Origin: Vicugna vicugna
Lineage: Eukaryota
NCBI GenBank assembly: GCA_013265495.1
Contig: MU057781.1
Location: forward strand, 1,426,001-1,490,000
Length of the DNA stretch: 64,000 bases
Reading direction: 5' to 3'
Shown here: positions 44,375 to 56,905 of the stretch, piece by piece
Position numbering within the stretch: position 1 is the first letter of the stretch
How the letters are laid out: the number at the start of each line of letters is the position of its first letter
The notes under the pieces: generated by a model
Database searches by the model: none
Seen by the model: only the letters and a program-made list of their open reading frames with translations
Told to the model about the DNA's origin: nothing
Position numbers and translations under genes: made by a program

Positions 44375-44520
44375 NNNNNNNNNNNNNNNNNNNNNNNNNN
44401 NNNNNNNNNNNNNNNNNNNNNNNNNNNNNNNNNNNNNNNNNNNNNNNNNNNNNNNNNNNNNNNNNNNNNNNNNNNNNNNNNNNNNNNNNNNNNNNNNNNN
44501 NNNNNNNNNNNNNNNNNNNN
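44375..44520. other. Assembly gap (146 N) inside L1
   Basis: Run of n. Confidence 1.
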
Positions 44521-49575: not shown

Positions 49576-49947
49576 GGCTGCTTTGTACAAATTGGGAAGC
49601 TCTATTTTGGTCCATTTCAAGGACATGCCACCATCTTTTAGGAAAGTTGGGATGGAACATGGGGTTTTTAAAAAAGTTTTTAAATATCTGTAAGACACCC
49701 ACAAGTAGGCTTGCGGCATCAATTATAACACTGTATTAACAAAAACAAAACCCTGAAAAACAAGACAAAAGGAACACATAGACGCCCACGGCCCACTAGG
49801 AGCAGCAGTGCCTGCCCAGGGCGCGAAAGCTGCCTGGGGTGCTGCCGGCGGGTGGGGACCAGTGTCCGGCCCTGGGACCAGCTGGCCTGGGTGGTGCAAA
49901 ACAACACCCCCAGCTCGAGCCCTCTCTCCCCAGCGGACCCCCAGGCC

Positions 49948-51237
49948 CTAGGGCCTCGCAGCCCTAGGACAGGTAATACACGCTGTAGGCAGCCACGGCG
50001 GGGCGAAGAGCCTTGGCACGTGGGGCCGGGGGCCCGCCGCGCCCCCGCCATACACCGCCGGGGAGCGGTGAAGGTGGGCGCCCAGGGGGAAGGGTAGGGC
50101 GAATGAGGGCAGCAGCGGCTTGGCCGCAAGCTTCAGCTTCTCCAGCTCGGCCTCCTGCAGTCGCTTGGCCTTTGCTCGGCGATTCTGAAACCAGATCTTG
50201 ACCTGCGTCTCGGAGAGGCTCAGGCTGCTGGAGAACTCGGCGCGCTCGGCGATGGGCAGGTACTGCTTCTGGCGGAACTTGCGCTCCAGCGCCAGCAGCT
50301 GTGCGGCGGTGAAGGGCGTCCGCGGCTTGCGGTTGTTCTTGTGTTTCCGGAGGGTGCAGGGTGGAGGGCTGGGGACGCCTGAGGGGAAGAGAGCATGAAA
50401 CGGGCGCTCAGACGCCGGCAGTGCGCGCCCCTTTCCGACACGCCCATATCCCTGCAAAGGTCGGTTCTGGAGGCAAGTCCCAACCAACTCCGTGACCACG
50501 GCCCTCAGAGCAGAGGAGACTCCAAAAGTCTCCGTGGTACGAGAAGTGAGGCACCGCGGAGGCGGCGCGAGGAGAGGGGGGCCGCTGTGGACTCGGGCTC
50601 TGCCCCTCAAATCGGTGGCCCTGCGCCCCAGGGGGGAAGGTAACTCTGCGCATTTGGAGAAGTGAGGAAGCCGGGCGGGAAGCCGCCGCAAGAACTGAAC
50701 GGTGAGCGCAGAGGCAACCATCCACCCGTTAACCATCTCGTGGAGGGGCGGGGACGCAAGGGGTGCTCCGGCCAGAGAGAAGCCCGGGGTCTTGGTTTGC
50801 GGGCTCCGTCCCAGGGTAGAGCAGAAGCCTGTCTGGCATGGGGGAGCCGCTGGGGGATTTGCGTGCAGGAGGGGTCGGTGGACTCGTGAGGGCTGATTTC
50901 TTTCTCTGCACTCAGGCCTGCGCGTTAGCGGCTGGTTACTTTCCGAAGTTACGAGCGACAGCGCCCTTCCCGCCCTGGTCCTCCGATCCTTGGCCAGGCA
51001 GGCTCCTCTCGCGGCCCAGAACCGTGCAACAGGGCACTTACGTGGGGAGGATGAGGGGGCGACCGGCGGGAACCAGGCCCCGGGTTCCGCGGTGCCCCGC
51101 GGCCTCTCCTCCCGGGGTTCCGCGCGCTCTGCCTCCAGCAGCGACTGGACGCTGAAGGGCAGCGAGCCAGGCCCCGCGCGGTCCCGGCCGCACGTCCTGA
51201 GCCCAGCGGGGTTCATGCCGAGCGATGCCGGGGCCAT
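49948..51237 (-). CDS. MSX3: Msh homeobox 3, two exons (51042-51237 and 49948-50378), 208 aa as written; C-terminal frameshift, possibly a decaying gene
   Basis: Exon 1 reads [13 protein letters not shown]...[13 protein letters not shown] (eh1 motif)...GAWFPP. Donor C|GTAAGT at 51041, acceptor TTCCCCTCAG at 50379. Exon 2 reads [21 protein letters not shown]...[31 protein letters not shown]; homeodomain at 50155-50334. Position just downstream of ZNF511 matches mouse Msx3. Confidence 0.93.
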
Positions 51238-56804: not shown

Positions 56805-56905
56805 GTGGGGGTAGGGGTGGGNNNNNNNNNNNNNNNNNNNNNNNNGGGTTGGGGTAGGGTTAGGGGTAGGGGTAGGGGTGGGGGTGGGGGTAGGGGTGGG
56901 GGTAG
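56805..56905. repeat. (GGGGTR)n G-rich hexamer repeat spanning a 24-N gap (56822-56845)
   Basis: GGGGTG/GGGGTA/GGGTTA units on both sides of the gap. Confidence 0.9.

Follow-up and report, generated by a model that had tools for sequence, protein, structure and literature searches.

Introduction

In mouse, Msx3 encodes a transcriptional repressor with a homeodomain, and its expression is restricted to the dorsal part of the embryonic central nervous system (CNS) (PMC11089253). Msx proteins carry a C-terminal motif, MH6, which was named by Finnerty et al. and is described as a PIAS-binding domain (PMC2655272). In human MSX1, a 1-bp deletion just upstream of MH6 (p.A282Rfs*21) replaces the motif with an unrelated peptide and leads to tooth agenesis, and mice in which MH6 of Msx1 was disrupted by CRISPR show a recessive phenotype that is milder than that of the Msx1 null (Mitsui et al. 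2016, PMC5137164). MSX3 has been reported as absent from human, chimpanzee, macaque, cow and dog, and as present in mouse, rat, pig and horse (Zhong and Holland 2011, PMC3141429).

Here, we describe the MSX3 gene of Vicugna vicugna and its counterparts in other camelids. The analysis started from a stretch of 64,000 nt (assembly GCA_013265495.1, contig MU057781.1, positions 1,426,001 to 1,490,000), referred to below as the window, and all positions are counted from its first nucleotide. An initial annotation of this DNA had proposed that a 1-bp deletion frameshifts the conserved C-terminus of MSX3, that the gene may be at an intermediate stage of loss, and that the frameshift might instead be an assembly error.

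Results

Structure and identity of the gene

The gene consists of two exons, with the intron just upstream of the homeodomain (Table 1). When read in the frame of the homeodomain, the spliced coding sequence (CDS) is 627 nt long and encodes 208 amino acids. The same two-exon structure was found in all nine other mammalian sequences that were compared (9/9), at loci where the annotated proteins were re-derived exactly from genomic DNA with a GT-AG intron of 650–663 nt. Exon 1 is shorter than in non-camelids, in which it has 214 nt, because of an in-frame deletion. It carries an Eh1/MH1N-type motif (LPFSVQSLL), so the N-terminal repression motif is kept, with a single E-to-Q change that is common to all camelids.

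Table 1. Coordinates of MSX3 features in the window
Feature	Position	Strand	Remarks
MSX3, two exons	51237–49948	minus	Assigned as orthologue
Exon 1, 196 nt	51042–51237	minus	Start ATG at 51237–51235; ends in phase 1
In-frame deletion of 18 nt (6 residues), camelids vs other mammals	near 51123/51124	minus	In exon 1
Exon 1 splice donor	GT at 51041–51040	minus	GTAAGT
Intron, 663 nt, GT...AG	50379–51041	minus	3′ end ...CCCCTCAG at 50379
Acceptor AG	50380–50379	minus	Exon 2 begins at 50378
Exon 2, coding part, 431 nt	49948–50378	minus	Includes TAG stop at 49950–49948
Homeobox, 60 codons, NRKPRTPF...AKRLQ	50155–50334	minus	Pfam PF00046, E = 6.8e-22
Camelid-specific in-frame insertion of 3 nt (extra Gly in YGGGAAG)	50042–50050	minus	Placement ambiguous within a G-rich run
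Site of 1-bp deletion, ancestral CCC-GTG to CC-GTG	49996–49998	minus	From alignment of four camelid sequences with Physeter and Equus
New tail reading, 15 codons + TAG	49948–49995	minus	Stop in last exon
Ancestral MH6 tail, out-of-frame remnant, 10 residues + old TAG	49964–49996	minus	+1 frame, intact

The best matches of exon 2 were MSX-3 proteins, with 98% identity to Camelus, 86–90% to whales, horse and bats, and 80% to mouse Msx3. Identity to MSX-3 of other mammals is 80–90% overall, compared with ∼71–75% for Msx1-type proteins of birds, amphibians and fish. The spliced translation differs from the camel MSX-3 models at three residues and is equal to them elsewhere. In a maximum-likelihood tree, the window sequence groups with Camelus (support 100/99) within the placental MSX3 clade (98/97), and the Msx1-type sequences lie on the other side of the tree; this contrast set consists of the bird, amphibian and fish Msx1-type proteins, mammalian MSX1 and MSX2 having fallen outside the length filter of the search. 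Best matches, tree and exon structure concur on MSX3, the name under which the gene was initially annotated.

The homeodomain differs from that of other mammalian MSX3 proteins at one to three positions. T10A is common to all camelids. Ser27Pro, at the start of helix 2 (50254–50256), is present in the window and the alpaca assembly, absent in Camelus, and found independently in gray whale MSX3, in which the tail is intact. Camelid MSX3 shares T43S with whales and horse (bat and panda keep T43), and the N that immediately precedes the homeodomain with whales, horse and bat. With the other features of the family in place, sequence comparison identifies the gene as the camelid orthologue of MSX3 (Msx family, ANTP class) without one family motif, MH6.

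The intron is a multiple of three in length and contains no in-frame stop codon, and for this reason a mechanical 429-aa open reading frame (ORF) extends from the ATG across the intron as far as the stop. In dromedary the intron is 13 nt shorter, and the open intron frame is therefore not conserved; it is a chance outcome in GC-rich DNA and not a conserved read-through form. An exact look-up of this intron-spanning ORF in assemblies of public sequencing runs returned no record. Runs of N occur in the window at 44375–44520 (146 bases) and 56822–56845 (24 bases), both more than 5 kb from MSX3.

The one-base deletion and the displaced tail

The genomic MSX3 genes of the window, dromedary, two Bactrian/wild camel assemblies, sperm whale and zebra were aligned, with the missing base coded by a placeholder in the analysis script for the alignment only. 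The sperm whale sequence GCC GCG CCC GTG GCC GCC TAC GGC corresponds to GCC CCG CC- GTG GCT GCC TAC AGC/AGG in every camelid. One C has thus been lost from the run at 49998–49997, immediately before G49996, and this site falls inside the approximate range of 49997–50003 to which the shift had been assigned. The initial coordinates of both stop codons, in the homeodomain frame (49948–49950) and in the +1 frame (TAG, 49966–49964), were re-read without change, as was the length of the CDS up to the latter (196 + 415 = 611 nt, one short of a multiple of three). From the deletion to the old stop, camelid DNA is colinear with that of whale, and there is therefore no compensating indel nearby. A compensating role was also rejected for the two other camelid length changes, the 3-nt insertion and the 18-nt deletion of exon 1, both of which are in frame.

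The tail that is read in the +1 frame agrees with the ending of the Msx family and is not a chance match. Nearly all of 129 retrieved Msx proteins, from chimaera and rays to mammals, keep the ending Y-x-x-Y-Y-L-S (Y-x-x-Y-Y/H-L-S/T/A with its variants). In frame, MH6 is absent from camelid MSX3, and among MSX3 orthologues only the camelid proteins are without the MH6 tail outright. The alignment with whale and zebra and the intact MH6 in the +1 frame thus uphold the proposal that a 1-bp deletion replaced the conserved tail. The new tail of dromedary differs from that of the window by one residue (A to G).

In pig MSX3 (P0125, P0126 and P0085), the tail is either divergent, AAYCRYYFS, or replaced by an alternative ending, AAYCSHRPPYVPGKMKSHDEF. 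Pig MSX3 is also one residue shorter just before the homeodomain, has the longest branch of the tree (0.26) and may be under relaxed constraint. Four gene models (P0014, P0019, P0123 and P0124) splice around the lesion and were judged to be prediction artefacts, as they depend on an intron of implausibly small size or on downstream exons that are unrelated. The first ∼60 nt past the ancestral stop (within 49900–49963) are ∼90% identical between camelids and sperm whale, and the proximal 3′ untranslated region seems to be conserved in its own right.

Distribution among camelids and age of the deletion

The same base is missing in five independent sequences, namely the window, alpaca, dromedary and two Bactrian/wild camel assemblies (GCA_036321535.1 for dromedary, GCA_048773025.1, GCA_009834535.1, and GCA_048564905.1 for alpaca). 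The initial annotation had suggested that an extra base in related genomes would mark an assembly error; the comparison came out the opposite way, as none of the camelid assemblies that were compared carries it. Over 7.3 kb, the window is 99.8% identical to the alpaca assembly, which is therefore not the same sequence, and 96.6–96.8% identical to the three Camelus assemblies. The alpaca gene (L006) has the same length as that of the window and differs from it at 2 nt. The shifted tail is also present in the NCBI proteins of C. dromedarius, C. ferus and C. bactrianus, and the NCBI alpaca protein is a LOW QUALITY PROTEIN in which the frame was artificially corrected.

Old World and New World camelids (camels and llamas) are reported to have split ∼16.3 Myr ago (PMC12127551). 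As the same base is missing in both, the deletion is older than this split of ∼16 Myr ago. In the sequences compared, both camelid tribes share the deletion in fixed form, and the only economical explanation is that it arose once, in stem camelids.

Selection on the gene after the deletion

Since the deletion predates the Camelidae crown, every crown substitution occurred in a gene that was already tail-less. The crown changes in the 192 codons that precede the frameshift comprise 13 substitutions and no indel. Nine of the substitutions are synonymous, at third codon positions, and four are nonsynonymous: the homeodomain Ser27Pro and a Leu-to-Arg change in the New World lineage, and a Pro-to-His and a Pro-to-Leu change in Bactrian/wild camel. 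Compared with 421 nonsynonymous and 155 synonymous sites, these counts give a binomial p of 0.0018.

Branch-specific omega values were estimated with our own implementation of the GY94 model, using 11 sequences, a fixed species tree and 199 codon columns. Omega was 0.162 for the non-camelid background, 0.204 for the camelid stem and 0.099 for the camelid crown. A crown omega of 1 was rejected (2dlnL = 16.1, p = 6e-5 with F3x4), as was a stem omega of 1 (p = 4e-4), and a crown omega equal to the background was not rejected (p = 0.42). The crown estimate varied with the codon-frequency model, from 0.10 (F3x4) through 0.15 (F1x4) to 0.19 (equal frequencies), and neutrality was also rejected with F1x4 (p = 1e-3) and equal codon frequencies (p = 3e-3). 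It was likewise rejected in each tribe, with p = 5e-4 for Lamini (New World) and p = 0.04 for Camelini (Old World).

The comparison of the window with dromedary gave a divergence of 3.1% in 6.6 kb of intron and flanks and of 1.4% in the CDS. Neutral evolution would predict 13 nonsynonymous differences and ∼1 indel in the CDS, but only two nonsynonymous differences (Poisson p = 2e-4) and no indel were observed. Further lesions were sought in the five camelid sequences and none was found; all keep the ATG, the GT-AG splice sites and the open 208-codon frame, and none has a CDS indel relative to the others. The four differently built selection tests, which rest on small numbers (13 substitutions), agree with one another. 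They indicate that the 192 codons upstream of the frameshift stayed under purifying selection after the deletion, and that, as far as substitution patterns tell, MSX3 has behaved as a working gene ever since the loss of its tail. The suggestion that this lineage holds MSX3 at an intermediate stage of loss is not supported, given that the open frame is kept, no new indel or stop has appeared, and omega (∼0.1–0.19) is significantly below 1 and like that of other mammals.

Discussion

A camelid MSX3 without MH6

The reading that we consider likely is that a 1-bp deletion in stem camelids replaced MH6 and that the rest of MSX3 was retained, encoding a working homeodomain repressor that lacks this motif. 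In the common ancestor of living camelids, one C was lost eleven codons (ten residues and the stop) before the end of the gene, so that the ribosome would read 15 unrelated residues in place of the ancestral VAAYG(M/V)YYLS. The new stop lies in the last exon, and nonsense-mediated decay is not expected; the mRNA would escape it. The predicted spliced mRNA of the live, MH6-less gene has the 3′ end CCGCCGTGG. Its putative product is a protein of 208 amino acids in which the Eh1-type motif, linker, homeodomain and MH5 are intact and MH6 is missing. This protein may be made in the embryonic dorsal CNS, as in mouse, and would still bind DNA and repress. The interaction that depends on MH6 would be lost, being either dispensable for MSX3 or covered by MSX1/MSX2, and it is possible that the loss of MH6 only weakens function. 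When the 208-aa camel products were looked up by exact match among assembled public sequencing runs, the only records returned were NCBI genome assemblies.

Evidence from other mammals bears on this reading in both directions. Some mammals do without MSX3, and this dispensability may explain how a gene without its tail came to be fixed. Mice with disrupted MH6 of Msx1 are affected more mildly than the null, so an Msx protein without MH6 is weakened and not dead, which fits the selection that was observed here. On the other hand, the tail is nearly invariant across vertebrates and its loss would be expected to come at a cost. The proneness of MSX3 to loss in mammals and the Ser27Pro change of the New World lineage are also counted against a retained repressor.

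Alternative explanations

The frameshift could have inactivated MSX3, leaving a unitary pseudogene that decays slowly and drifts toward loss as in primates, cow and dog. In favour of this, losses of MSX3 have occurred repeatedly among mammals (PMC3141429), MH6 shows hardly any variation elsewhere, this motif is important for MSX1 function (PMC5137164), and T10A and S27P are unusual changes for a homeodomain. However, S27P also occurs in gray whale MSX3 with an intact tail, no second indel, stop or splice-site lesion has accumulated over ∼2 × 16 Myr, nonsynonymous divergence is ∼7-fold below the local noncoding rate, and crown omega is significantly less than 1 under three codon-frequency models and in both tribes. 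These observations make a decaying pseudogene unlikely. It is more improbable still that the protein is dead and that constraint acts on the exon DNA, for example as a CpG-island regulatory element or a non-coding transcript. The high similarity of the 3′ flank past the stop between camelids and whale does point to some non-coding constraint at the locus, but the predominance of synonymous third-position changes in the crown is the mark of constraint at the level of translation and not of the DNA itself.

It is very improbable that the old tail is still produced by recoding at the deletion, whether the ribosome shifts to the −1 frame or the transcript is edited. Recoding would account for the out-of-frame remnant and its stop being intact in all camelids, but the sequence at the site, C-CCG-CCG-TGG, is not a slippery heptamer of the type X-XXY-YYZ. 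Moreover, at ∼3% neutral divergence ∼1 change is expected in the 33 nt of the remnant and one is seen, which is nonsynonymous in the old frame, so an intact remnant is what chance would produce. As 33 nt give no power, conservation of the remnant was dropped as a means of dating the deletion or of testing recoding. An assembly or sequencing error, with an extra C and an intact tail in the true genome, can practically be dismissed. In its favour are the GC-rich surroundings of the site and the frame correction that NCBI applied to the alpaca model. However, the same single base is absent at the same position in five sequences, which represent at least three or four species and come from different assembly projects, and the run is short (CC/CCC), with no long homopolymer.

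Annotation and significance

MSX3 orthologues are often named ‘homeobox protein VENTX’ or ‘MSX-2-like’ by NCBI (for example in sperm whale, beluga, several bats, harbour seal, echidna, chinchilla and mole-rat), and the VENTX slip has also been remarked on in PMC11089253; the missing human orthologue is probably the cause of this systematic error. The VENTX labels would also fit a position of MSX3 next to VENTX, as in the VENTX/ADAM8/CALY neighbourhood of mouse Msx3. In alpaca, the correction that underlies the LOW QUALITY flag restores a tail that is probably not made by the animal, and it is the Camelus models, with their shifted tail, that represent the gene faithfully. The lesion is thus already visible in public annotation, through these models and the alpaca flag. 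No paper on the lesion or on camelid MSX3 came up when the literature was searched for MSX3 in combination with camel, alpaca or dromedary.

The camelid gene is a lineage-specific variant of a well-known gene. A retained repressor without MH6 would make the camelids a natural experiment on a tail that is conserved from cartilaginous fish to mammals and whose disruption in MSX1 causes tooth agenesis in humans. With less assurance than we attach to the retained repressor itself, we lean toward regarding them as a natural knock-out of MH6 in an Msx protein that is more than 16 Myr old and was nevertheless kept by selection, which would imply either that a motif reported to bind PIAS is unneeded for a conserved neural function or that camelid MSX3 shifted to an MH6-independent role. 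The effect on camelid biology may be nil, because several mammals are without MSX3 altogether. In genome scans, a frameshift is easily conflated with a gene on its way out; here, the lesion is ancient and the gene is constrained.

Comparison with known Msx systems

Camelid MSX3 resembles mouse and rat Msx3 and the MSX3 genes of whales, horse, bats and carnivores in having two exons, a phase-1 intron before the homeodomain and a product of ∼204–208 amino acids. It shares with placental MSX3 the LPFSV-SLL repression motif, a near-identical homeodomain and MH5, and 80–90% identity across exon 2. Unlike in other placental MSX3, 15 unrelated residues stand in place of the final 10 (MH6, VAAYGMYYLS), exon 1 is six residues shorter in frame, one extra Gly is present and the homeodomain carries T10A, with S27P confined, among camelids, to the New World lineage. 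A 1-bp deletion just upstream of MH6 that exchanges the tail and leaves the homeodomain intact is the same type of lesion as in human MSX1 p.A282Rfs*21 and the MH6-disrupted mice. However, those alleles are deleterious and affect a paralogue, whereas the lesion of camelid MSX3 is fixed in a whole mammalian family in a gene that is still under selection. The losses of MSX3 in primates, cow and dog concern the same gene in placental lineages and show that it is dispensable in some mammals. In contrast to these lineages, the camelids have an MSX3 that is complete apart from its tail and, judging by its substitution pattern, selectively constrained.
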